Positions 676 to 43,900 of a DNA stretch of 64,000 nucleotides are shown piece after piece. This DNA is from Mytilus trossulus (lineage: Eukaryota): the NCBI RefSeq assembly GCF_036588685.1, contig NC_086373.1, positions 38,006,001 through 38,070,000 on the forward strand. The letters are read 5' to 3'. Numbering within the stretch: position 1 is the first letter of the stretch; each line of letters opens with the position of its first letter. The notes below the pieces were generated by a model that did not search any database, was not told where the DNA came from, and was given only the letters and a program-made list of their open reading frames with translations. The position numbers were made by a program, and so were the translations under genes.

Positions 676-3600
676 GTAAATTTTGTTTGTTTGTTGATTA
701 TACCTGAATGTTATACCTTAATAATCAGTTGCACAAGACTTATTGATTGTATAGTTTATAACGCTCTCATGAAAAACGAGTTATCTAACGGTTAATTTTG
801 TTTTGTTTAATGTAACCTCCAACTTAAGGAAAAAAGTTGACTTTACTGATGTTCAAAAGTCATAACTAGACTGAGAAATAACAAACACGGGTTACAAACT
901 TAAACTGATGATATTATTTCTTTATAACAATAATGTTCAACTGAAGTTCTCATACCTTTTTACCGTTTAGGGAGTTGTTTCGTAAAATTCAACATTTAAG
1001 AAAAGAAATACATTCATGTAATGTCATCATAAAACAAAAAGACTTGAAAGGGTCAAACATAATTTTAAGAATTAACTAATTTCATTTTGAAAATTAAATG
1101 ATTTTAGGAAGTTAACTCTATTGAATCTATGGTATGAAACAAAAACAAAATATTTTTTACAAGGCAAGGATTGTCTCAGTTGTATATGAGAAAAAACAAA
1201 TGATTTTGTCATGTGATTGTGAATTACCAATTTTTTACTCTTTAAAAAGGGGGCAAAAGAAACTTAAGCAATATCCGCTTTCATCTTTGAAACATATATA
1301 TTCTATAACCAGTGGAAAAAACTAAGTTTGGAACTAAATTACACGAATGTCTGTACTATTAATGTTTCCGTCTTTTCGATATAACCACGAAAGTGTGGTA
1401 TACACTTTTAGATAACCCAATACGCGAGTTATTTAGTATGCACATATTACTGTCATTCATTAAATAAATATACAGATATGCATTGTCCTCATTTAAGATT
1501 GCAAAACCCCTATTCGAGAGAGATGTGTTCGAAACGAGCTCTGAAACTGTTTTTTTTTTGTTATTTTTTTTACCTTTTAATACACACAACTGCTTGTTGT
1601 TCTTCTACCTTAGGTAAATGGTATAGCCATAGAACTACCAACCGTATTGGTAAATAAATCAATGGAAATAACAAGAAGTGGGAGTTTCATCACAGCAGTT
1701 CATTCCAAATGTAACATACGGGTCCAGTTTGATGGTGATCACATGATCAATTTAAAGGTTTCTAAAAATACTTTTGCTGGAAAGTTAACTGGTCTTTGTG
1801 GGAACTGTAATGGGAATAAACAAGATGACTACCAAACCAAGTCCGTAACCGTTGTTTCTGAGAAGGAATGGGATGACAACAAAGTCATATCAAATAGTTT
1901 CAAAGATTCGGATGGTGGTGAACAACCATTAATTAAGTAAGAAAATGTACGAATAGAGCTTGTATTCCTTTCAGGGAATTTATATAATTTGACGTTTAGT
2001 ATCTTAATCATATTTAAGTAAAAAGTAGGATAAAAAAACGTTCTCCGAGAAAAATTGATAAAAGAAAGTCCCTAATCAAATATCAAAATCAAAACTTCAA
2101 ACATAACAACTGAATGGATAAAAACTGTCATACTGCTGAATTTGTATAGTAAACCATTCCTTTTAATTTATTGTTAGTCATAGCTGTATTAGTACTCGTT
2201 GGTGTAGAATTACATGGACTTTAATTACTTTACAAAACGATCACGTAAAAGATTTCAATCGCTGAAATAATTTAGAGATTATATTTTGATTTGATATTTT
2301 ACGAAGCAATTCAAAGCGATTGAAAAAGAGTTTATATATTTTTTGGATTGAATATTTTTATTAAGGTGGTATGGATGTCTTCCTTCATCTTGGATTGTAA
2401 AAAACAGAGAACCAATAGTCCAGATTTTCAATCTAGTTAGCAAAATTTGATGCAGGAATGTAGATATTTAATGTGAATTTACATTAAAATGAACCAATTC
2501 ATAAGAATATAACTTATAAATATTAAAATGTTTGCAAATGTTGATTAGTTTTGGTTGTTTAAAATAAATGAAATTAGCATTTTAAGGGGAGGTAACTCTA
2601 AAACAGTGCATTTTCTGAAGGATTCTATATGAAATTTTCCTATTTTGTATTTAAGCCGGAAAAAACGTACGGTGACCCTATCTTTTCTTTTGATATTCTC
2701 AAAGCAGTGTCTGAAAGCTATCTTTTCCTTAAGTATTTAACAATTCTCTCATGTTGTTTAATTTCTCATCAAAAAATGGTGTTTTTTCCTTTATATTCCA
2801 TACAAAATATGTAATTTTGTCACGTTCTGTAGCTTGAGGAAATGCACGGAGACCTATCATTTTTATTATATTTTTCAACATATACCAATAGTACTAGGTT
2901 TTGGCAAAGTATGAACAAATTCTATCATTTTTATTTTAGACTCCCATACCACCTTAAGGGGTCATATGATAAAGTTAGTAAATACCTTACATCGTGTTAA
3001 TGTTAAATCTTCTCAACAGTTTAGTTGGAGTTCATGACCAAAGTAAATGTTCAGTAAAAGACAAAGTTCGAGCTATGAAGGATGATCATTGCTGGTACCT
3101 TATGTCAGAATCCAGTCCATTTAAGATTTGTAAAGAATCAAAGAAAGTAGATTTTGCCAAGAAGTACTCTAGTTGTGAATTTGATGTTTGCTTCTCTGAT
3201 CACGAAAATTCCCATTGTCCAACATTACAGCATACAGCATATGAATGTAGTCAACATGGATATATGGTGAAATGGAGAAACTCAAATATTTGTCGTAAGT
3301 TTTTAACTGTTTTTAAACAATATTGTTTGCCAAAACAATTAATGACGTAGAGAGATATGTGCGTAACACCTCTGTACACAAGCTTTTTCATTTTATAGGC
3401 TCAAAATTTAAAGTGAATATTTCTTTTAATCAAATAGACCTGCTTAGAGACAGAAATTACCTTCATGTTGAAATGTCGCAATTGTCTTTGACCACAATGC
3501 CGTCATATTTTTCGAATATGACGTCACCAAATTTTTACTTACATACTAACATGGAGAACACAACAGTTGTCAAATAAAGAACAACATAATTATATTTACA

Positions 3601-6600
3601 TTTCCGTTGAAGCGTATATCATTTCCCTTTTGTAAATAGAGTAAGGGGTCTAGTTGTTTCAATCATTGTAGGTGGGCGATTTCTATCTATAAGGTAGCTG
3701 TATCTTCCGACTCTCATGTCTGTTTTATTTGTTTTCGTAACTTTTTACATTTCAAACCGTCAGTTTTCTCCCTTAGGCTTGAGAAAACGGTGATAGTCCA
3801 TCGGAAGAAGACGATAAATGTCTGACCCGTGTTAAGAGAGAGCCATATCTCTTGAACGTAAAAGACACCCTTGTAGATTTTGAAAAGAGCAGGCTAATGT
3901 CGCTACAAGGCAGCACTCGCACCCGCAAAGTGAGAGGGGAGTAATAAAAGTTACAAAACTTGTTTCCCAATCCACTATAAATAAATATGTTTAAACTAAA
4001 CTCATCTAATACATGTACAAATGAGACATGAACAAGGAAATTCAAACATGAACACAAATATATAAATTTATTTATATACTGAGTGCCAATGAAAACGCAC
4101 CACTTTGTTTTTCAAAAATAAAATTTATAATTACAAATCATAATTTTCAAAAGAACTTGTTCTTGAAAGTTAACAATTTTAACAATATATTGATGTCAAA
4201 CAAAAAGGTTTTATTGTTATCTTTCGGGCGCAATAGGTAAAAGAAACATCCAAGGTCGAATCATCAACCTACAGTCCTAACAAAAAGTGTTACAACCCCG
4301 TAGTGCACCGCAATCTAGACAGCGGCGTGGAATTGATCATCCGGGACGTTTAATGTGATCCCGAGGAAATTTATTCCACTTTTCCCGCAAAGCAAACTCA
4401 AGTAGACTTTATGATATTGTTGGTGGTTTTCATCGTTTAAACCATGTCAAATCTGATGCAAAATTTGGTTGATCGGACAAATATTCGGCGAAAGGCATGA
4501 ATTGTGGCCAAGGCGGATGCCAAATGTCTATGTAACCACCAATGACGGTTTTTGGTACATAATGAATGATTTTAGGTCTTCATAATTCGATATTTACGCC
4601 AGACGGCCGTTAAGATGGCACTAAGGAAAGATTGTGGTGCTCTTTAACAATTCCTGCGCACATGGTGCTTAACTGAAATTGCTCCAAAGGTTCTATCGTG
4701 ACCACCATTGTACACTCGTGACCTTTGGACAGCCATCAGAGTCGATATCGGATATCTTAAAGACCAAATGTATCGGTCTTGCTTAGCGTTTCTTGCTTTT
4801 TATACCTCGTTATCATTAACTGATCCATTTTGGTTGAATTTGTGGATGAGTTTGATTTTTGTAGAGGCTACAACATCAGTTTTCTCGTTATTGTATGCTG
4901 TGAAAGGCTTTATAGGATCATGCCCAAATCTGCGTGTCGCTGGTTGTCAGAAAGTCCTGGCATTTACTCAGATGTGTATTGCAGTTTCGTTACAATAAGG
5001 GCGGGAAAACTCATGACATTAAACAAGCTTTGAATGACAAATCTTGAAAATGGTGCGTATGTTGAAAAGCGGTGAACTCGGTTTATGTCCGTTCAAAATA
5101 ACCCTTACTTCACATTTGTTCCAAAAATTACCCAACCGTGAAGTTGCCGAAAATTGTTGTAAAAGTCATTTTCAACCAACTCTTCAAAGTTTTAATATAA
5201 ATAAAATAAAAACTATAAGATTTTTTTGAAAAACAAAAGTGTTGCGTTTTCATTGGCACTCAGTATACATGTATTTAAGCTAGCCTTTTTAGCTCACCTG
5301 GCCAAAAGGTCAAGTGAGCTTTTCTCATCACTTGGCGTCCGTCGTCGTCGTCGTCATCGTCATCGTCGTCGTCTGTCGTCGTTAACAATTTTTCAAACAT
5401 CTTCTCCTCTGAAACTACTGAATGGATTTAAATGAAACTTAGCATGACTGTTCCTTAGATTATTCTGCACAAAGTGTGTGCTTCGATTTTTGATCCGTCA
5501 AAAAACATGGCCGCCGTTACTTAAAATAGAACATAGGGGTCAAATGCATTTTTTGGCTTATATCTCAAAAACGAAAGCATTTAGAGCAAATCTGACATGG
5601 GGGGGGGGGGGGGGGGTGAAATGTTCATAAGGTCAAGATCTATCAGCCCTGAAATTTTTAGATGAATCAAACAAACCATTGTTGGGTTGCTGCCACTTAA
5701 TTGGTAATTTTAAGGAAATTTTGCAGTTTTTTGTCATTATCTTGAATATTATTATAGATAAAGATAAACTGTAAACAGCACAAATGATCAGCAAAGTAAG
5801 ATCTACAAATTAGTAAATATGACCAAAATTGTCAATCGACCCCTTAAGGGGTTATTGTCCTTTGATGACAATTTTTCACAATTTCTTCATCATATTTGCC
5901 AACTTTTAAAAAACTTCTCCTCTGAAACTACTGAATGGATTTGGATGAAACTTAGCACGATTGTTCCTTAGATTATCCTGCACAGAGTTTGTGCTTCGAT
6001 TTTTGATCCGTCAAAAAACATGGCCGCCGTTACTTAAAATAGAACATAGGGGTCAAATGCAGTTTTTTGGCTTATATCTCAAAAACGATAGCATTTAGAG
6101 CAAATCTGACATGGGGGGGAAAATGTTCATTAGGTCAAGATCTATCAGCCCTGAAATTTTCAGATGAATCAAACAAACCATTGTTGGGTTGCTGCCACTT
6201 AATTGGTAATTTTAAGGAAATTTTGCAGTTTTTGGTCATTATCTTGAATATTATTATAGATAAAAATAAACTGTAAACAGCAAAAATGATCAGCAAAGTA
6301 AGATCTACAAAAACGTTATATGACCAAAATTGTCAATTGACCCCTAAGGGGTTATTGTCCTTTAATGACAATTTTTCACAATTTGTTCATCATATTTGCT
6401 AACTTTAAAAAATCTTCTCCTCTGAAACTACTGAATGGATTTGGATGAAACTTATCATGATTGTTTCTTAAATTATCCTGCACAAAGTTTGTGCTTCGAT
6501 TTTTGATCCGTCAAAAAACTTGGCCGCCGTTACTTAAAATAGAACATAGGGGTCAAATGCAGATTTTGGCTTATATCTCAAAAACGAAAGCATTTAGAGC

Positions 6601-9600
6601 AAATCTGACATGGGGGGGGGGGGGGGGGGTGAAATGTTCATTAGGTCAAGATCTATCAGCCCTGAAATTTTCAGATGAATCAAACAAACCATTTTTGGGT
6701 TGCTGCCACTTAATTGGTAATTTTAAGGAAATTTTGCAGTTTTTGGTCATTATCTTGAATATTATTATAGATAAAGATAAACTGTTAACAGCAAAAATGA
6801 TCAGCAAAGTAAGATCTACAAATAAGTTAATATGACCAAAATTGTCAATTGATCCATTAAGGGGTAATTGTCCTTTGATGACAATTTTTCACAATCTGTT
6901 CATCATATTTGCTAACTTTAAAAAATCTTCTCCTCTGAAACTACTGAATGGATTTGGATGAAACTTAGCATGATTGTTCCTTAGATTATCCTGCACAAAG
7001 TTTGTGCTTCGATTTTTGATCCGTCAAAAAACATGGCCGCCGTTACTTAAAATAGAACATTGGGCTCAAATGCAGTTTTTGGCTTATATCTCAAAAACTC
7101 CAGCATTTAGAGCAAATAAGACAAGAAGTTAAAGTATTTATTAGGTCAAGGTCTACCTGTTCTGAAATTTTCAGCCGAATTGGGTAACTTGTTTTTCAGG
7201 TATAATGCCCCTGAATTGATGATTTTAAAGAAATTTTGCAGTTTTTGGTTATTATCTTGAATATTACTATAGATACACATAAACTGTTATAGCAAAAATG
7301 TTAAGCAAAGTAAGATCTACAAATAAGTCAATTTGACCAAAATTGTCAAATGACCCCTTAAGGAGTTATTGCCCTTTAAAGATTTTTTTTCACAATTTGT
7401 TCATCATGTTGACTTACTTTTAAAAATCTTCTCCTTTGAAACTGCTGTATCAATTTCAGCCAAACTTAGGCTAAATGAGTTTCACAGTATCTAGTATGAA
7501 TTTTATATTTCATTTCCTTGTATGTCAAGAAACATAGCTCCCTCCTATGGCTTAAATAGAACATAGGAGAAAATGTTGTTTTTTTTTGCTTGTGAAGAAA
7601 ATAGGACGATTCAAAGAACATTTAGATAAATTGAAAAGCCAAAATAATCATTGATGAGAGATTTAACCAAAAAAATTAAGGTGAGCGATTCAGGCTCTTG
7701 AGAGCCTCTTGTTAAAATGAAATTTCGATCGCATAGCTTATTCCCCCACACTCAGAGAATTCTTACTATACGCATTAGATGAACATGTTATGCTTACAAA
7801 TTATCAACTAATAATAAAAATCTACCATGCATATTACAGCCCTTAATTGCACAGGGGAGTTTGTGTATAATACACCCGTTTCATGTACCAATACCTGTGA
7901 GAACCCAAGATCCACACAGAATTGTCAAGATCCACCTGTTGACGGCTGCACATGTCCAGATAAAACATATTTGAATGGCGGTAAATGTGTTACTATTGAC
8001 AATTGTGGATCCTGTGATCTAAAAATTGAAGGCATATCATCAAAATTAGCAGTAAGTGTTACTTTAATTAGTGTTTTTAATCAATTGAAAATTAAGATAC
8101 GTATGAACAAAACCTGCATTGATATATGTAGGTCTTATTCTAATAACTTAACGTTTGCCCTTGAAGTTAATGGTAATAAGTGAATATTTTTTCATATCAT
8201 AAAAGAGAAAACATTTTTTAAATTTCTCGTTTGCCATATATGTTACATGTGAAGCCGGATCTACCTACTCTCCCGGGCACCTGAGAACATCCCGGTTTTG
8301 GCTGTGTTATGTTGCTCAGTCTTTACTTGCTGTGTTTAATGTCTTTTTTCATATTTTGTCATGTTATTGTTATATTGTTTTCGACTTACAATGTATGAGC
8401 TTAAATATCCCTTTGGTATCTTTCGACTCTTTTTTGTCGTTTGTTTATGTCTGTCATAATTGTTTTCGTAACTTTTTTATAATTTAAGTTTTCGCTCTTA
8501 AAGTGCTTCCCATTTTGTTCATGTGCATTGCAATACACCTGAAAACAAAAACAAAAATATTTGTAAATAAATAAAGGCAACAGTAGTATACCGCTGTTCA
8601 AAACTCATAAAGTTGAAATAACTGTTCCATTAATAAAACGTATTAAATTCAAATATACTTTCTGATTGGGTACACATGCATACGGAGTTGATGAACTATG
8701 GTCTAAATTATACCGAAAAATAGGTTTACTTGTAATTACGTTCATTGTAAATCCTGGTATTGACATACCATATGTTTTCATTTATCAATAATTAATGCGG
8801 ATGTTCAATGAATCCCTTGAAACAGAAATTTCGAAAAATTCTGCCAATTAAATTGGAAAATATGATAATTGTTTCAAACATTGTAGGTAGGCGATTCCTA
8901 TCCAAAAGGTAACTGCACTGTGTCTCAAAAGTGTGACATAGTAAATAACAGCTTCCTATTAGTAACTATTCAACCGGTGAAAATCTGTGATGTTGATGAA
9001 TTGTGTACAGCAAACGACATTGGACTATATGATTGTACTAAGAATTCTAGTAAGTTTATTTTATTCAATTTTACAATCAGCTCTCAGTCTTCAAAGACAC
9101 TAATCTAATGAATTGACTTCATCAAAAAGTAAAATCACAAAAATACTGAACTCCGAGGAAAATTCAATCGGAAAGTCCCTAATCACATGGCAAAATCAAA
9201 TGACAAAACACAAAACAAATGGACAACAATTGTCATATTCCTGACTTGGTACAAGCAAATGGTTCCATAACGCTAAACCTCTCACGTGTACGACAGTTGC
9301 ATCAAATTTGATAAAATTGATAATGATGCGTGAACAAAACAAACAGACACAATAGGTAAAAATGTCACAAATAAAGGTAAAAAGTCTTTATCTTAAGCCA
9401 TATACAAATATAATATACAAATATAATACACGTTAAACACTTAAACAGAGAAAGACAAAGACTTTTACTAACACTTTTGTATCACATATTTGCCAACAGG
9501 CACTCAAATCAAAACAAGGAATACAATAAGTAGGTACGTTATAGTCAGCATATTATAATAATTATTATTACGCATGCAATCATATTGTTTAAGTTTCAAG

Positions 9601-34900: not shown

Positions 34901-37900
34901 ACCCCTCCCCCCAAAATAAAAATGAAATAAATTTCTAAATAAAATGTATTAATGTTAGATTTGTTACAACATTCATTGAATTAATATCATAAACTGCCTA
35001 AACTGTTCAATAATTGATTACTTTGTTTTAACTTGGTTACTTTTGTTATCATCAAAAAGTATTAGAATAATAAATACAATTTCTGAAAAATTTATCTTTG
35101 AAAATATTTGATTTTGTTTTAATTTAACAAAAAAACAGACAATTTTTATATAAGTCTTCCTAATGTCTGGTTAAATGTCTCTGTAATGTACATGCATATT
35201 GATGCATTCACATATCGTCAAGTTCGGCGGCTTCTGTAATGTTACTTGTATTGGAACAATTCATTCCCCGACATTCCCCACATGCTGGGGAACAGTCTAT
35301 TCCGTGTTTGCGACATGAGCATCGTTTTGTGTCACAATTCAATTTGCAATTACATCTGATTATCCTAAGAAGCTTTTCGGGAGCCGATGGTAGTAATGCT
35401 CTAATTGGAAGCAATTTGTTGTCCTCAACATGCCAACCCCAGTCCTCTGGACCGTTGCTTCTAGGTTTTTCAAAACATCCGATTCACCCGCTTCTGAAGC
35501 TGACAGCTCTACAGAGGATAATTGAGAATATAATTCATCAATTTCCTTCATTTCAGTTGTTTGAAGGGTTGAATTGGGTTCTTCCAAAAGTTTAGATACG
35601 TCAATATTAAATATATCTGCAATCAACAAACAATAAAGTGCTGTATCCACCAACATGTGACCTCTAAACGCTCTAGCTACAGCTTTTCCGCTAAGGATAT
35701 GCGTGAATGCATTCGGAGCGTATATGAGATCTAACATCTCTTTCAAACCAGTATTACTCATAAGATTCCCTATTGAGCCGAGGAAGCTCATCTCTGTGTG
35801 GAATGGCCATAATCGTAAAAACATAGACTTCAAGTTGCTTCCTGGATTTTCGTTTTCAATAATTGATAAAGCTTTCGAATACAGAGGTTGATCAAAAGTC
35901 AAAATCGCTGGTATGTCATAACGCTTTGCTTGGTTGGCGACGAAGTTCAATGTAGAATAGATACATGTCATGTCCGAAGCATTCAAATCTATCATGAAAC
36001 TGATGATTTTCCTGGGTAGTCTCCCGTCTGAACCATCTGCATGAAGCCAGACCACATTGGTATTGGAAACTTTAAAGGCCAAATAATAACCGACAGCAGA
36101 TCAAGACGGAAAGTCTTATCCAGTGTGTTTAGGTTTTTTAACTCAAGCATAACTTAATTCAGCCATACGATCTGATTGAGGTTTGTAATATTTGATCTCT
36201 ATCTTTGCTAATGCCTTCATTTCATCAGTAGAAAAAGCTATTCTAGGAATGGGTTGTGTCTCTTCGTACCAGGCGTAATTCCAGCTATTATGCACATGCC
36301 ATGAAAAGTGTTGAGGTCATCTATCGTTCTTGTGTTGTGGTCAACGTTATCTGCTACAAATTGTACAAAGCTGTTGCTTATATCGCCTGGAAGGTCAACT
36401 CCTTGTACAGCTACAGTACTTGATTCAAACTTCTGGACTTCATAGTATGAGGAACAAAATCCTAAGCTGTTCAATGTGGACACAAGAAATCGTGAAGCGG
36501 AGTTGTGATGCACCTGTACTCCTAGACCGAGTTGAAGCGGTGTTATAAGTGCTCGAGGTCGTGAGGCTTGCATTACTGCTTGTCCTATGGAAGCTATTTT
36601 CACCGATGGATCTTTCTCAGAAAATATATTAGAAAGAAATGATAGCAGGCTTTCGGGTAAGTATGATAGATTATTATCAAATGATGCAATGTTGGCTGGA
36701 GTTGGATAGATAGACTTTGTGGTATTTACAGATCGGATGTCGCTTTTTATCAGTTTGACAGCTGCTCTGATTGTACGAATCACATAAAGTTTAACTTAGG
36801 GCGAAGAGATGAGTATGCGAGTTAACCATGTATCTATCTTTTATTCTTTTATAAAATCATATGGTCGCTAACAATCGATTCTCTACAAATAAAGAATAAT
36901 TTTACATAAGTAAAAATACATAAATTATAATAAGATGCACATGTTTAAGTATTCACATTAAACTAAACAAACAATAAAAACCATTTCATTCATGTATCAT
37001 AATTTCTCTCGTAAGTTAAATTACGTTTAAAATAATAATTAAAAGTTACGCATATTTCTAATAAATAGTACACAATGTTTTCTCTCTTTAAATAAGTTTT
37101 GATATAATAAAAAGATAGTATACATAAAAAGTTTCTTACCAACTTTAATCTGTCTAATAAAACAATGTGCATCCGTATGTTATCAAAATAAAGTCTAGAC
37201 GACGAAGCGCACATCAAAGGCGTAACGTCATAAAACAGAAACGGGAAAATGTGTTGTTCAAAAGAGCGCAACGTTACATTAGCGCTTTCATAAATAAATA
37301 GTAAAAACTGTGTTTCTTATTCTTACAAGAATAAATGAATATGTTAGTTAAACATTTAATAAATAATAAATTTATATTTAAAATTTGAATATTTCAAATC
37401 TTACACTCCCCACAATGAAATTACCAAATAATTTCTTAATACAGTTAGAAAAATATATTACAATTTTGTCACCAATAAAAAATAGTTCTATTTAGAACAC
37501 TCGAGTAAGCATAGTTTATTTGTGTCTCAAATCTGTGACTGACTAGTTTTGACCACACAGCTACGGATATGACCATGACGGCTCCTTGTGATCTCGACTA
37601 TTCTACCCGTTATCCTCTCTGTATATCATCAGCAACTAAAACAATATCGTCTATTTCAACATCTTGTTGTTCCCTCTGCCATTTGCTTCTTTGCTGCGGC
37701 TTTCTTTCCCCTCCTTTTGTTTCCTCTTTTCTCGCTTTTTTGGATGGAGACCTTGCCCTTTTCTTTCCCCTTCGTGGGTTCTTGGAACGAGCACGTTTTG
37801 CTGCCTTTCCCGGGGAGGCGAATGCTGACCTGCTCCTGCTCCTTCTGTTGGACATGGACTTGGATGAACGATGAGTTGGGCTTGGCATCCGTCTTGCTGG

Positions 37901-40900
37901 GTGATATAAGACTGACTCCGTCATTTTCATAGCCTCTGTATCATCTGTAGACAAGCAATTCTTATCTTCTCGTGCTCTATCATCATTTATAACATTTGAC
38001 GCATGCATATCTTCAATAGGACCACGAATAGCCCATCCGAGGCGTGAGCGAATTGCATATGGTTGGTTTTCGTTACCGGACCTTACTTCTAGCGGAATGT
38101 GAGCGTTAGGTGAATCTGTACCTATTAACAACATGACCTCGGTTAAATCAGTAGAGGGTATCTGTATATCGGCTAAATACGGCAATTTTCTTATATCTAC
38201 ATTTTCTGCGGCAGATCGAGCAGAAATTGGAAGCTTCTTAACTGACCAGACCTTTTTTAACGACACGTTATCATTTCCGTCAATAGCTTTTACTTGTAAG
38301 TCAACTTCTTGACCGTGAATTGTACTACCAGAAGAGCTAACAGTAGACATCTCGAAAGTGACCGGCTTGCTGGCTATATTTAATTTCTGAAGTAATCGTT
38401 CATCACATAAAGTTTTATCTGCTCCGTCATCTAGCAAGGCAAATGTTTTGCAAGAGTTACCGTTCTGACCCTTAACGAGGACAGGAACAATTCCTAAACA
38501 GTTCTTAATCATAGAACCTTTAGTAGCTGCGCAATTTACTGACTGCTGAGTAGCTGCATGATCAAAACCGGGCTGAGACCAACTATGCAATAAAATATTA
38601 TGCTTAACATTACAGTCAGATACAGTGCATGCTTTTGATTTTCTACAATTGTTAGCAAAATACTTCCCTTTTAAACAATTATAACACAATTTTAACATGC
38701 GTACTAATTTATACCTATCATCTAAACTCATTGACTTAAATTTGCTACAAGATGTCAAATCTACACATGTACCTGTACAACATTTACATTTTTGCTCATA
38801 TTTAGCTGTGTTATCTAAACTTTGAGTACTTAACGTAGAAACCTTACTATTAACTGTATCATTATTATGATGTTTACTTGTAAAAACCCTATTATCAGTC
38901 TTGTTCTGATTGTTTTCTCTACAAATATCGTACCCATACATAGAACTAGCAATGCGTGATTTTTCGTCTACAAATTTTGCTAAGTCAGAAAAACGAGGTT
39001 CTCTACCAGACTCGCTAATTGAATGAGCAATATCGACCCATCTTGTTCTCATATGCATTGGAAAGCGTTTAACAATACACCTTAAATTTTCAGAATTATC
39101 AATATCTGAATTAAAACCTAACTGAGACAATGTGATTTCACATTTTTGCATTTCTAATGCCAATTTAGATAAACCTTCAATATCTGACGCTTTAATCTGA
39201 GCGCCGTACACTAATTTTTCAATAAATGATCTAGCAATTACATGTGGCCTACCGTATCGGGAGTACAATATTGCCCTAGCACGTTTGTAACCCTCATCAG
39301 AATCTAATAATACACAATCTTCTATACAACACTTTGCTTCACCTCTACAGTACTGAATTAAATAACTCAGTCTCAAACTATTATCACTTATTCTACCTTC
39401 AATGTTTGTCTCAAAGTTCCGTATAAACTTACTATAGTCTAACGGAGTTCCATTAAAAGTTAATAATTCTGGTTTTGGCTAATTAAACCCTTCGTGAAGT
39501 GTAGATGCTAGGCGTTGAAAAGCCGAATCTATGCTGGAAACACTTACATCCGAAAATCCAGACTGAGCACTGATTCCCTGTGTACTGTTATTAATGTTCA
39601 TCTTTGGTTTATCAGTTGCTGCAGTTTGTCCGGAAAGAGAGTTCATTTTAATACACTTTTCACTCGCAGGAACAGAGCTCTGTAATGTTTGCGAGACTGT
39701 TGCGAAATGTTCCGAATGTTCACGATTCCACTGGTATTATCTGTGTCTTCTTCCACTGCTTCTTGCCACACTGATTCTTCGATATTTGCCTCTTCCATCT
39801 CGGATAGTTGATTAAATACCTGTTGTCTAAATTTAATTTCTATTTGTGCACGCTCTAGTTCATGCTGTTCTGATAATTTCCTGAGTTTAAGTTCTGCGAT
39901 TAGCCGCTTAGCTTTGGCACTGCGAAATCTAGATTGTGATGAAACTGAAGATCGTGAACTCAAACTGCTTTCAATTGAAACTGTATCACTTTCTTCGGGT
40001 ATTTCCTCTTCATGCGATTTTTCACTCGCGATATACTGAGAAAATCTATCCCGGAATTCTACAAAGTTCTCATGACAACGTTCATAGTTCACTTCCAAAT
40101 TTGCTATAACTTCTGATTGTGTACACAAATCTAAACACTGTAAGTGTGCTAACTTAAATTGTTCAAACCTTTCACATAACTTTGAATATAATTGTTTTGC
40201 ATGTTCCACGTTCTCATATGAAATTAAATTCTTCTCCAATTCTTTGTACAATTTAGTAAGCTGCGCTAAATTCGTACTACGAGTCCGTTTTGCATCACTG
40301 AAGTCCAGACAGTCTTCTTTCCGTCTATCGGTAGCCATTTTTTTAACAAATATTCAAAATTCGGCACAATTTTAGAATTTCCTCCTCTCCAGAGTTGAGA
40401 ATTGTACGAATCACATAAAGTTTAACTTAGGGCGAAGAGATGAGTATGCGAGTTAACCATGTCTCTATCTTTTATTCTTTTATAAAAATCATATGGTCGC
40501 TAACAATCGATTCTCTACAAATAAAGAATAATTTTACATAAGTAAAAATACATAAATTATAATAAGATGTACATGTTTAAGTATTCACATTAACCTAAAC
40601 AAACAATAAACACCATTTCATTCATGTATCATAATTTCTCTCGTAAGTTAAATTACGTTTAAAATAATTATTAAAAGTTACGCATATTTCTAATAAATAG
40701 TACACAATGTTTTCTCTCTTTAAATAAGTTTTGATATAATAAAAAGATAGTATACATAAAAAGTTTCTTACCAACTTTAATCTATCTAATAAAACAATGT
40801 GCATCCGTATGTTATCAAAATAAAGTCTAGACGACGAAGCGCACATCAAAGGCGTAACGTCATAAAACAGAAACGGGAAAATGTGTTGTTCAAAAGAGCG

Positions 40901-43900
40901 CAACGTTACATTAGCGCTTTCATAAATAAATAGTAAAAACTGTGTTTCTTATTCTTACAAGAATAAATGAATATGTTAGTTAAACATTTAATAAATAATA
41001 AATTTATATTTAAAATTTGAATATTTCAAATCTTACACTGATCAAAGCTCTCTTTTCGTCATCTGGATTTAAATCGTTTGGTCTCTGATAATAGTCCTGA
41101 AGAATACAAGTCACTGTTTCACGTAGAGTTACAACACTTTTTCTACCTGGTATGTCTGTAATAATGATTTCGTCTCCAAAATGTTCCAATCTTTTCTTTA
41201 AATACATCTGACTATAAGCATTCCCATCACACATCTCGTCCAAGATCTGATATGGAAATCTGTTCGTCGTCATGATGTTTAAGGAAGTCGACTATTTTGT
41301 AGAAGCCGTCTTCTTGCAAAGTTGGCCTTCCTCTTTGGTTTTTCAGGCTTTGCGTCTGGTGATATGGGAGAACGGAATACAGGAGTGTTTTTGCACGTGC
41401 GGAAGTTTACACTACATGCCTGGTGATAAACAGCATCCGCTGCTTGGAGGTCGCTTACGCTCTCCAGTCTTCCGCGAACCTCATCTGCCCAATCTTCATT
41501 CCGAAGATCACAAGCATCTTGTATGCGACTCTCAAAATCATCAGTTCGAACCTGAAATACATTTTTGTCTTTTTTCTTGGAGTCTGTTGCTTCATTTCCA
41601 CAGAATAAACAATGTTGTTTAAAATCAAAATGGGACTTTGATCGTAATTTTGGAGTATTTGTATTAATTTCTCTCAGAACAAGTTTTTCTTTTTTGTATG
41701 TCTTTATGTCATTTGGATTGGTATATGTTTTCCTGCAGAGTTGATGGACAAAATTACCCTTATGCGGACAAACAGTCTCCTCTTTCCTGGCTAGCTTTGA
41801 TGATTCCAAGACAACCTTTTTGTCGCAATTTGATCAGTGTTGTTTGGTGGTCATCTTTTAGGCACACAATACATTTCTTCATAGTATAGATGTAGCTGAA
41901 AAGAAATAGTACACAATCATTTGTTGTTACATATTTAATTTTTATATTTGTCATATAACATATCAATACACATTAAAATATTATTCAGAACAACAAATAT
42001 AAACAACATCGACTCTTAATGAATAATGTTTTCTTGTCCGTGTGATGTTTCTTTTTTTAGTGTGTCTATACACTGTAATTCATTTGTCCATTTCTCAACT
42101 TCTTATGAATTCTAGCACTGCTGAAGATAATGAATTATTTGAAAAGTGTCAAAAAGGGCGACAAGAGAATCAATAGGCTTAAATCGCGTCCGAGAAAACG
42201 AAAAGGACATTAAGACAAACAAGACAAACTATACAAAGTACACACAGAAACGAGCATCTTGAACTTAAGAAGTACAATTTTATTGTAAAGCATTAAAAAA
42301 AGTATACTATGTTCGATGTTTTCCCTACTTGGAAATTTTCGATTGTGTTTTATTGTAACCTATTCCGTACATTTGTTTAGTTGACTATTCATTTTGAATT
42401 TGGTTTGAATTGACTTTTGATGGAACAAGATACGCAATCAAATATTTTTGACACGACTGTGAAAAAATACTTTCAATGAAATAGGCAATGCAGAAAAATA
42501 TAATATAGTACCTGATTTAGAAATTATTCGTGTGCTTAACAATTAGCACAGTGACTGTGGTTAGCTCCAATAAAATCATGACGCTAAATCGGACATAGGT
42601 TTCTTCAAGTGAAAGCTGAAATAGAATTACAAAATAGTTATTTTCGACAATAATTCATTAAAAAAGGAAGGAAACAATTATTTAAAATTATTTATTTGAA
42701 GAAAACGCAATAGAAGATAAGAATAAATGCTTTGGCTATAGTAATTAGTTCAAAATCGACAAAATTGCAATTTTTACTGTCCATTTTTGTTAATTTGGCG
42801 TTCCATACTTTTTTGTTTCCGTTAGGTACGAGTCTTACTACGTCCCTTTAAATTATTTTTATTGTTAAATTTTGGACTTTATTAATTGAAATTTAATTGA
42901 TTTTATGTAAAGGTAGTTGATTTTATTTATTTTCTTTGAACTTAACAAAAATATAGTGATCTTTGTCGTTTGACCTGCGTCAAGAACTTTCGTCTAATTC
43001 ATTTCTTGACGCATTTCCGAATATCTAAATACACGTAAAACATAAGTGTATGTTAAAAAAACACTTACCAGCATACTTTTATAATAACATAAATTTATGT
43101 AAGCGATTCTTTCAGTGATATCATCTTCTCAGTTGGTTTCTATAAATTCACATATGTAAGAGTCTTCTCCCTTTGTCAATATGGCGGACCATTTCTGACA
43201 TGAATCGGCAGGCACGTCACCGATATTTTTATTTTCAATTTTCACCGATTTCCGACCGTACGATTTTGTTAGACTTTTTTAACGGTAATGTTCTATGATA
43301 ATCTCATATGATATATAAAAAATCTTTTCTGTTGCAATTTGTTTAGGTTGATTCTGAAGACAGACTAGACTACTACACATTATGTCAAAATGAGACATTA
43401 AGACTTACATTAAGGTGGTATGGGAGTCTAAAATAAAAATGATAGAATTTGTTCATACTCTGCCAAAACTTAGTATCTATTGATATATGTTTAAAAATAT
43501 AATAAAATTGATAGGTCACCGTGCATTTTCTCAAGCTACAGGACGTGACAAAATGATAAATTTTGTATGGATTATACAGGGAAAAACACCATTTTGTGAT
43601 TAGAAACTAAACACAATGATAGAATTGTTAAATACTTGAGGAAAAGATAGCTTTCTGACAATGCTTTGAGAATATCAAAAGAAAAGATAGGGTCACCGTA
43701 CGTTTTTTCCGGCTAAAATACAAAATAGGAAAAGTGCATAAGAATCCTTCAGAAAATGCACTGTTTTAGAGTTACCTCCCCTTGAAATGCCAATTAATTA
43801 ATTTTTTTAAACAACCAAAACTAATCAACATTTGCAAAAATATTAATATTTGTAGGTTATATTCTTATAAATTGGTTCTTTTAAATGAAAATCACATTAA

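Follow-up and report, generated by a model that had tools for sequence, protein, structure and literature searches.

The window analysed here, a stretch of 64,000 nucleotides from Mytilus trossulus, carries at 36772-41037 of its minus strand a 4.27-kb, non-autonomous BEL/Pao LTR element in which a fragment of the gene for the sperm protamine-like protein PL-III, absent from full-length relatives of the element, stands in place of the reverse transcriptase-RNase H-integrase region. We consider, with a probability of about 0.88, that this element is one copy of a non-autonomous family born by a single jump of reverse transcriptase (RT) onto PL-III mRNA.

Anatomy of the window element and source of its insert

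The element is bounded by two LTRs with TG...CA ends and by a 5-bp target-site duplication (TSD), and Pfam gave no match for the ORFs in the adjoining host sequence. Its features are, from 5' to 3':

41038-41042 (-): upstream copy of the TSD, ATCAG, seen on aligning the borders of the two LTRs and in the flanks; these 5 nt recur after the 3' LTR
40403-41037 (-): 5' LTR, 635 bp, 98.9% identical to the 3' LTR
39643-40338 (-): N-terminal part of gag, a 231-aa ORF that is separate in the window copy (ORF and copy comparison)
37917-39376 (-): gag (DUF1759, Zn knuckle) and aspartic protease (DDGAD), the element-derived part of the long ORF
37913-37916 (-): 5' junction, 4-nt microhomology; GTCA here, ATCA in the parent, the gene and the oldest copy
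37889-37912 (-): leader derived from the PL-III 5' UTR, translated in frame as VLYHPARR; corresponds to 1504-1527 of L010, directly 5' of the PL-III ATG
37730-37888 (-): PL-III codons 1-53 (MPSPTHRSS...SPSKKAR) in the PL-III frame, 45/53 identical to the product of the PL-III gene
37728-37729 (-): internal deletion junction with a 5-nt AAGAA microhomology and a frame shift; 103 nt of PL-III CDS (L010 1682-1784) are gone
37697-37728 (-): 3' end of the PL-III CDS, out of frame (KEETKGGERKP), from the gene alignment
37687-37696 (-): 3' junction, 10-nt microhomology CAGCAAAGAA, common to the PL-III CDS (up to 3 nt short of its stop) and to the integrase tail of the parent
37610-37686 (-): C-terminal tail of integrase (RSKWQREQQDVEIDDIVLVADDIQRG) and stop codon, in the parent's frame
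37406-37413 (-): polypurine tract (GTGGGGAG) abutting the 3' LTR, read directly from the sequence
36772-37405 (-): 3' LTR, 634 bp, from the LTR comparison
36767-36771 (-): downstream copy of the TSD, ATCAG, from the border alignment

The long ORF (37610-39376, minus strand, 588 aa) combines the gag domain (Pfam DUF1759, E 4e-7 for the chimera), the Zn knuckle and the DDGAD protease motif, and continues after the protease through ...LSTDDTEAMKMTES, the leader, MPSPTHRSSKS...SPSKKAR and QQRSKW...DIVLV up to the stop codon; the ATG of the PL-III-derived stretch (37888-37886) is in frame with gag-protease. Four other copies have the N-terminal gag ORF joined to the ORF that follows it; in the window copy, relative to L030, the reading frame shifts upstream of 39700 and meets a stop near 39480. 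A 6-bp deletion at 37709/37710 is private to the window copy, contigs from other runs keeping those 6 nt.

A single PL-III gene was identified in the genome, on contig C14. Its 102-aa product agrees nearly residue for residue with the published alignment of PHI1_MYTED and the M. californianus and M. trossulus PL-III sequences, and the identity of PL-III was decided from this alignment after a HMMER protein-database search with the PL-III ORF had returned 0 matches at E <= 0.001 among 4,657 candidates, an outcome that most likely reflects composition bias and not novelty. Pfam found no domain in PL-III. The DNA of the insert is 90% identical to the C14 gene over 187 nt, non-coding leader included (E ~2.9e-65), and the composition-adjusted BLASTP E-value between its peptide and the gene product is 3e-13. 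The gene is uninterrupted from its predicted start to its stop, with no intron in the captured part, and a histone stem-loop lies in its 3' UTR, which is absent from the captured piece. The latter comprises the leader, the ATG and 53 codons, with an internal loss of 103 nt, and extends to 3 nt short of the stop codon. With the PL-III promoter, stop codon and 3' stem-loop missing as well as the 103 nt of CDS, the insert is a fragment of the PL-III gene and not a PL-III gene.

Where the chimera has its insert, L021 and L022, two full-length relatives, have 2,990 bp that encode RVT_1, Peptidase_A17, Integrase_H2C2 and rve domains and contain no PL-III sequence. In L021, the Peptidase_A17 match ('Pao retrotransposon peptidase') reaches E 1.9e-51 and is accompanied by the three other domains, while in L022 the segment missing from the chimera spans 4158-7147, leaving about the 25 last integrase codons. 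The chimera retains LTRs, primer-binding site (PBS), polypurine tract (PPT), gag and protease, and is non-autonomous because its own RT, RNase H and integrase are missing. Its gag-protease part in the window is 95-98% identical to both relatives, with 69 bp near 37984, present in L021 and L022, missing. These two were the only near-full-length parents found, and one has a broken pol.

The initial annotation, made from the letters alone, had described an R/S/K-rich ORF with its own ATG and leader, lying in the gag-protease frame between the protease region and the integrase tail. Reading of the ORFs agrees with it, and its limits (37686-37913) fall within 1-3 nt of those obtained by genome comparison, which place about 216 bp of foreign DNA at 37912-37697 (outer limits 37915/37912 to 37697/37687). 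The proposed PL-III origin is borne out by the DNA match to the C14 gene, the peptide identity and the published alignment, as is the replacement of RT-RNase H-integrase by the insert-free relatives. The same annotation named two readings that would undo it, namely that the basic stretch is a native BEL/Pao linker carried by intact members, or low-complexity R/K/S sequence resembling PL-III by composition. The empty HMMER search speaks for the second by exposing the strong composition bias of the protein, but the DNA identity extends through the non-coding leader and the BLASTP E-value is adjusted for composition; the first founders on the absence of the stretch from both full-length relatives. 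Both readings are thus refuted.

Junctions and spread of the chimeric family

The predicted PL-III promoter features TATAAA at L010 1472-1477 and a TCAGT initiator whose A, at 1503, lies 31 nt downstream, the transcription start being a prediction from this TATA/initiator spacing; L010 1500-1504 corresponds to C14:61074710-61074714. The captured piece includes no promoter sequence and begins at most 3 nt from the predicted start, with which the 5' junction (37913-37916) coincides. Microhomologies of 10, 4 and 5 nt are found at the 3' junction, the 5' junction and the internal deletion, respectively; in a simulation of random junctions, the probability of at least 10 nt was 7e-6 and that of at least 4 nt 0.017. 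The 10-nt 3' junction is one of only three 10-mers common to the parent interior and the PL-III mRNA, and when the 5.8-kb parent interior is compared with the initial 50 nt of the PL-III transcript region, the 5' acceptor scores highest; both outer junctions fall at the best parent/mRNA homologies. This pattern fits RT template switching.

We propose that RT would have been copying the element RNA within a virus-like particle where PL-III mRNA was co-packaged, would have left it for the PL-III mRNA at the 10-nt homology in the integrase tail, copied this mRNA back to its 5' end while skipping 103 nt at the 5-nt repeat, and returned to the element RNA just past the protease, at the element site most like the PL-III leader. 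The product would have lost the 2,990 bp of RT-RNase H-integrase, kept LTRs, PBS, PPT, gag and protease, and been mobilised repeatedly since, with enzymes provided in trans by autonomous relatives. We infer that an RNA intermediate existed, in which order the jumps took place, that the parents supplied RT and integrase, and that the element was active in male germ cells. Intron loss cannot prove an RNA route because the captured part of the gene is intronless, and the insert bears neither an intron-loss nor a poly(A) signature; the RNA intermediate is supported by the predicted cap-site start and the junction microhomologies. PL-III being a sperm-specific message, its capture points indirectly, and reasonably, to BEL/Pao particles forming in male germ cells. 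The divergence of the insert from the PL-III gene (10%), set against that of gag from one parent (only 1-2%), needs an extra assumption, either recombination with parents at a later time or a source allele that was itself divergent.

At least nine chimeric copies lie on seven contigs, and the same three junctions, with the 103-nt deletion, recur in 9/9. Distinct 5-bp TSDs were found in seven copies, that of the window among them, together with distinct flanks, and the seven LTR pairs measured are 98.7-100% identical, the two LTRs of L030 showing no difference. Identical junctions, distinct TSDs and near-identical LTR pairs lead to one capture followed by amplification in trans: the family has a single capture origin, its integrations are independent and its LTRs are young. 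Three copies bear a 253-bp deletion in both LTRs, which implies replication through RNA, since nothing else would duplicate the deletion. In four copies, gag, the PL-III part and the integrase tail are joined in one open reading frame of 912-958 aa. Among them, pairwise dN/dS values of 0.26-0.46 reveal purifying selection on gag-protease, whereas the PL-III-plus-tail part, with few substitutions among copies, yields 0.4-0.9, indistinguishable from neutral.

Contigs of sequencing runs that carry two other organism labels contain both junctions as well. A 274-nt contig from an RNA library (X18) passes from the PL-III 3' CDS into the integrase tail, for which DNA carry-over or an assembly path through the genuine PL-III mRNA is possible, as is a chimera retaining the 103 nt, in which case the internal deletion would postdate the capture; the RNA runs covered small shares of the stretch only, X15 corresponding to just the untranslated region between ORF and LTR. 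At the sensitivity used, no free PL-III pseudogene was found in the genome, and all the dispersed PL-III-like sequences detected lie within one transposon family. Two further claims of the initial annotation also stand: capture through RNA gains support from the predicted cap-site start and the junction microhomologies, and the idea that an LTR element disperses PL-III fragments agrees with nine copies and no free pseudogene. The annotation moreover describes PL genes as reportedly multicopy and accompanied by pseudogenes.

Alternative origins and a possible role of the cargo

A misjoin of the PL-III gene to a repeat during assembly, for which only the general risk of repeat-rich genomes can be invoked, is refuted by nine copies on seven contigs, seven of them with their own TSD and flanks, and by junction-spanning contigs in independent runs under other organism labels. 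Another alternative is an event at the DNA level, in which microhomology-mediated end joining (MMEJ) or replication-fork template switching (FoSTeS) would have pasted a piece of the PL-III gene into a deleted copy that was, by chance, a transcribed master. Microhomologies of 4-10 nt are typical of MMEJ or FoSTeS too, and the insert offers no discriminating intron loss or poly(A) tail. Such an event would nevertheless have to account for a promoter-free piece starting no more than 3 nt from the predicted cap site, which takes the place of element sequence instead of splitting it and shares its orientation, with outer junctions at the best parent/mRNA homologies, a pattern matching RT template switching as described in PMC5131818. 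We regard this origin as improbable.

The cargo might also be functional, either because a protamine-like, nucleic-acid-binding tail on Gag-protease aids packaging or acts in spermatids, or because the copies yield small RNAs acting on PL-III. The four copies with one open frame, the excess of chimeras over near-full parents (nine vs two) and runs of identity between insert and gene of up to ~30 nt, apparent by eye in the alignment, would be in keeping with a function. Against it, dN/dS in the PL-III-plus-tail part cannot be told from neutral whereas gag-protease is clearly constrained, only half of the PL-III CDS is both present and in frame, and non-autonomous elements often exceed their parents in number without special cargo. 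We regard this explanation, too, as improbable. One form of it, in which the in-frame tail helps the element to compete for parental RT and integrase in spermatogenic cells or the copies produce germline small RNAs modulating PL-III, is a speculation that we find hardly likely; if true, the advantage conferred by the tail could account for nine chimeras vs two near-full parents, and the small RNAs would link transposon silencing to sperm chromatin packaging. Capture of PL-III mRNA by template switching remains our preferred reading.

Comparison with known systems

The first 53 residues of the insert and its leader derive from the Mytilus PL-III/sperm-specific protein phi-1 (Q04621, Q1A5Z3, Q9TXE3), from which the insert differs by the lack of a promoter, of an in-frame C-terminal half, of the stop and of the 3' stem-loop, and by its location inside a transposon ORF. 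That the dispersed PL-III-like sequences detected all lie in one transposon family bears on PL gene counts in mussels and on the design of expression assays, primers and probes for PL-III. In the library searched, no paper joins protamine-like genes to retrotransposons in Mytilus.

In retroviral oncogene transduction and in gene capture by plant LTR elements (e.g. maize Bs1), a host mRNA replaces pol, the resulting element is replication-defective and helper-dependent, and Gag-cargo fusion proteins are typical. The mussel cargo differs in being a fragment whose 3' half is frameshifted.

LTR-mediated retroposition giving rise to chimeric retrocopies is known in metazoans, namely in Drosophila and mosquito, with Pao/BEL elements included (Tan et al. 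2016, Genome Res 26:1663, PMC5131818). The mussel family resembles these cases in that internal ORF sequence between intact LTRs has given way to a partial copy of an mRNA, with microsimilarity at the switch points (more than two switches being possible there), in the involvement of Pao/BEL elements (BATUMI and BEL18_AG there), and in the behaviour of the chimera as a non-autonomous element with secondary insertions. The capture mechanism is thus already known in other animals, and the mussel family is a clear mollusc example: it extends LTR-mediated retroposition to molluscs, indicates that capture can involve the mRNA of a gene whose 3' end is of the histone type, and would constitute an unusually well-resolved natural record of RT template switching, with outer junctions at the best homologies, a third jump inside the cargo and copying up to the predicted mRNA 5' end. 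It departs from the cases of Tan et al. by its host, a bivalve in a phylum unmentioned in PMC5131818, by its cargo, drawn from a sperm nuclear basic protein gene whose 3' end is of the histone type, by a capture reaching the predicted mRNA 5' end, by at least nine copies vs one to a few insertion sites in Drosophila, and by a gag-protease part under purifying selection to which the cargo is fused in frame.

Structure of the element and origin of its basic stretch

The window carries an LTR element with an interior of only ~3 kb.

Features of the LTR element
36772-41037, minus strand: LTR element
LTRs, minus strand: 635 and 634 bp, TG...CA, 98.9% identical
37413-37406: polypurine tract GTGGGGAG, adjoining the 3' LTR
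Flanks of the element: 5-bp target duplication, ATCAG
37610-39376, minus strand: long ORF, 588 aa

The long ORF contains a BEL/Pao gag domain (Pfam DUF1759), a zinc knuckle and a DDGAD protease motif. Its translation runs from ...TEAMKMTES via a short leader into MPSPTHRSS...SPSKKAR, then through a few odd residues to QQRSKWQRE...DIVLVADDIQRG and a stop, bearing out the order described in the initial annotation (protease region, leader, basic stretch, integrase tail). In this copy the reading frame is interrupted twice, near 39480 by an in-frame stop and upstream of 39700 by a frame change. The insertion lies in a run of minus-strand ORFs (240, 181, 87 and 176 aa; 35360-36783 and 41010-41809) that had no match in a Pfam search; they appear to be parts of one longer coding sequence that the element has split. 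This disrupted sequence may be a gene specific to the lineage or a second mobile element.

When 321 bp spanning the basic stretch were used to query the genome to which the window belongs, three types of match came back: a locus on contig C14 (L010) matching only the middle of the query (90% over 187 nt, E 2.9e-65, and 85% over a further 46 nt), eight further loci aligning over the entire chimeric region with 86-97% identity, and some loci matching the query ends only, ~3 kb apart. L010 is an intact gene for the sperm protamine-like protein PL-III.

Features of the PL-III gene (L010 coordinates)
1472-1477: TATAAA
1503: A of the TCAGT initiator
1528: ATG of a 102-aa ORF ending ...KKAAAKK

In this gene region (1380-1912; G000:C14:61074590-61075122), the initiator lies 31 nt downstream of the TATA box. 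The 3' UTR contains a histone stem-loop (RF00032, 37.8 bits, over the Rfam threshold), and ~115 nt ahead of the predicted start there is an AAACACA motif that resembles the histone H1 box; the histone-type 3' end and this motif are consistent with the proposal that protamine-like proteins descend from H1. The encoded protein matches, nearly residue for residue, the published alignment (Fig. S1 of PMC13113032) of M. edulis phi-1 (Q04621), M. californianus PL-III (Q1A5Z3) and M. trossulus PL-III (Q9TXE3), and in BLASTP the chimera peptide shares 45/53 identities with it (E 3e-13, composition-adjusted). A large HMMER protein search was blank, as expected from so biased a composition. The initial annotation had assigned the basic stretch to PL-III, correctly so given the C14 gene match, the published alignment and the BLASTP result.

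Junctions with the parental element and the PL-III gene

The genome search yielded two near-full-length parents and no more: L022 (contig C11), a full-length relative with both LTRs, and L021 (contig C13), with a 1,267-aa pol ORF containing RVT_1, Peptidase_A17 (Pao), Integrase_H2C2 and rve. Parent and chimera are collinear up to GGAATCA (L022 4151-4157) and again from CAGCAAAGAA (L022 7148-7157); between these blocks the chimera lacks 2,990 bp of the parent, and the parents lack PL-III sequence. The possibility raised at the outset that the stretch is a native linker of intact autonomous members is thus contradicted, since L021 and L022 have the 2,990 bp there instead. Downstream of the protease, near 37984 (L022 4018-4084), both full-length relatives have an in-frame segment of 69 bp that is missing from every chimeric copy; contigs with and without it both occur in other sequencing runs.

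Anatomy of the captured piece in the window copy
37916-37913 (L010 1500-1503): 5' switch site, ATCA in parent and gene (GTCA in the window copy)
37912-37889: captured leader, 24 nt
37888-37886: ATG; 53 PL-III codons, to 37730
Internal deletion: 103 nt of CDS (L010 1682-1784) lost at a 5-nt AAGAA repeat, shifting the frame
37728-37697: last PL-III-only CDS, 32 nt
37696-37687: 3' junction microhomology, 10 nt, CAGCAAAGAA

At the 5' junction the parent reads ...GGAATCA/TCTTT, the gene ...GCATCA/GTCTTG and the oldest chimeric copy GGAATCAGTCTTG, which therefore places the switch in ATCA. This site falls exactly at the mRNA start predicted from TATA/initiator spacing, and the captured piece includes no promoter sequence. 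The 3' microhomology falls 3 nt short of the PL-III stop codon, and reading continues in the parent integrase frame. A 6-bp deletion at 37709/37710 is private to the window copy.

Chance was assessed with 2 million random parent/mRNA junctions, in which microhomology of at least 10 nt arose at a frequency of 7e-6 and of at least 4 nt at 0.017. The 3' junction 10-mer is one of only three common to the parent interior and the PL-III mRNA. Each 50-nt window of the 5.8-kb parent interior was aligned with the opening 50 nt of the transcript region, and the 12 that scored highest all overlap the real 5' junction. Because of this 10-mer scarcity and the placement of the 12 windows, both switches lie at the best available homologies, the kind of site at which a nascent minus-strand cDNA would switch template. 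Synthesis would have proceeded from the element 3' end to the 3' CDS of the PL-III mRNA, through an intramolecular skip to the mRNA 5' end, and back into the element after the protease.

Copies, age and coding state

Searching the genome with the PL-III gene at both DNA and protein level found that gene and nine chimeric copies, the window locus included, and nothing else. All three junctions are identical in 9/9 copies: a single capture was followed by many integrations. Seven copies, including that in the window, have unrelated flanks, distinct 5-bp target duplications (ATCAG, ATAAC, GTGAT, GATAG, TTCGT, CATGC and ACTAT) and LTR pairs 98.7-100% identical. Three copies (L026, C2:14.15 Mb; L027, C37:0.19 Mb; L031, C10:21.49 Mb) form a sub-family in which both LTRs have lost the same 253 bp, leaving LTRs of ~375-385 bp, so the shortened LTR still permits retrotransposition. 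One copy has an internal deletion and one a 5' rearrangement. The rearranged copy, L028 (C4:5.08 Mb), carries at 1015-2150 an inverted duplicate of the integrase-tail/3' LTR start after its 5' LTR, followed by a normal interior; its target duplication is clean and its LTRs are 99.8% identical. The old copy L033 is ~9-12% diverged, with no clear target duplication.

Divergence between the insert and the PL-III gene amounts to 10%, and most differences are common to L033. Part of this divergence lies on the gene or allele side, because at one position the chimera reads RRGKK like PL-III of other species, and the gene in this genome RKGKK. Identity between parent and chimera is 98-99% in gag but only 91-93% from integrase tail to polypurine tract (element positions 900-2700 versus 3345-3630), a mosaic that suggests that, after the capture, parent and chimera RNAs packaged together recombined.

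In four copies a single frame of 912-958 aa is open across gag-PR, PL-III and integrase tail. Among these four, gag-PR has pairwise dN/dS values of 0.26-0.46 (binomial p 1e-4 to 0.08; pairs not independent), so the family seems to need its own Gag-PR; values of 0.4-0.9 for PL-III plus tail are not significant and lend no support to a need for the PL-III peptide.

Independent sequencing data and known systems

Between 54 and 65% of sampled 31-mers of the stretch were present in runs of four other organism labels and of mollusc or marine metagenomes. Contigs of X1 (organism A) and X4 (organism B, DNA) cross both junctions. A 274-nt contig from the RNA library X18 (organism C) runs from PL-III CDS into the integrase tail (window 37599-37758) and has 125 nt against the 16 of the window, the length expected without the 103-nt internal deletion; either it comes from a chimera in which the 103 nt persist, or the assembly was routed through real PL-III mRNA. 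Junction-spanning words are present in this library, which is not proof of transcription.

The presence of a PL-III-derived stretch inside a BEL/Pao element is confirmed, and the capture interpretation of the initial annotation is supported. Among the papers searched, none ties PL genes to retrotransposons in Mytilus. The mechanism itself is already known, and this case adds an instance: Tan et al. 2016 (PMC5131818) described it in Drosophila, mosquito, zebrafish, chicken and mammals, including Pao/BEL elements, with a median microsimilarity of 6 bp, multiple switches and secondary retroposition as pseudo-LTR elements. The window element agrees with those retrocopies in every testable respect; new here are the mollusc host, a cargo that is a sperm nuclear basic protein, a captured sequence that extends to the predicted cap site, the nine copies and the in-frame Gag-PR-cargo fusion.
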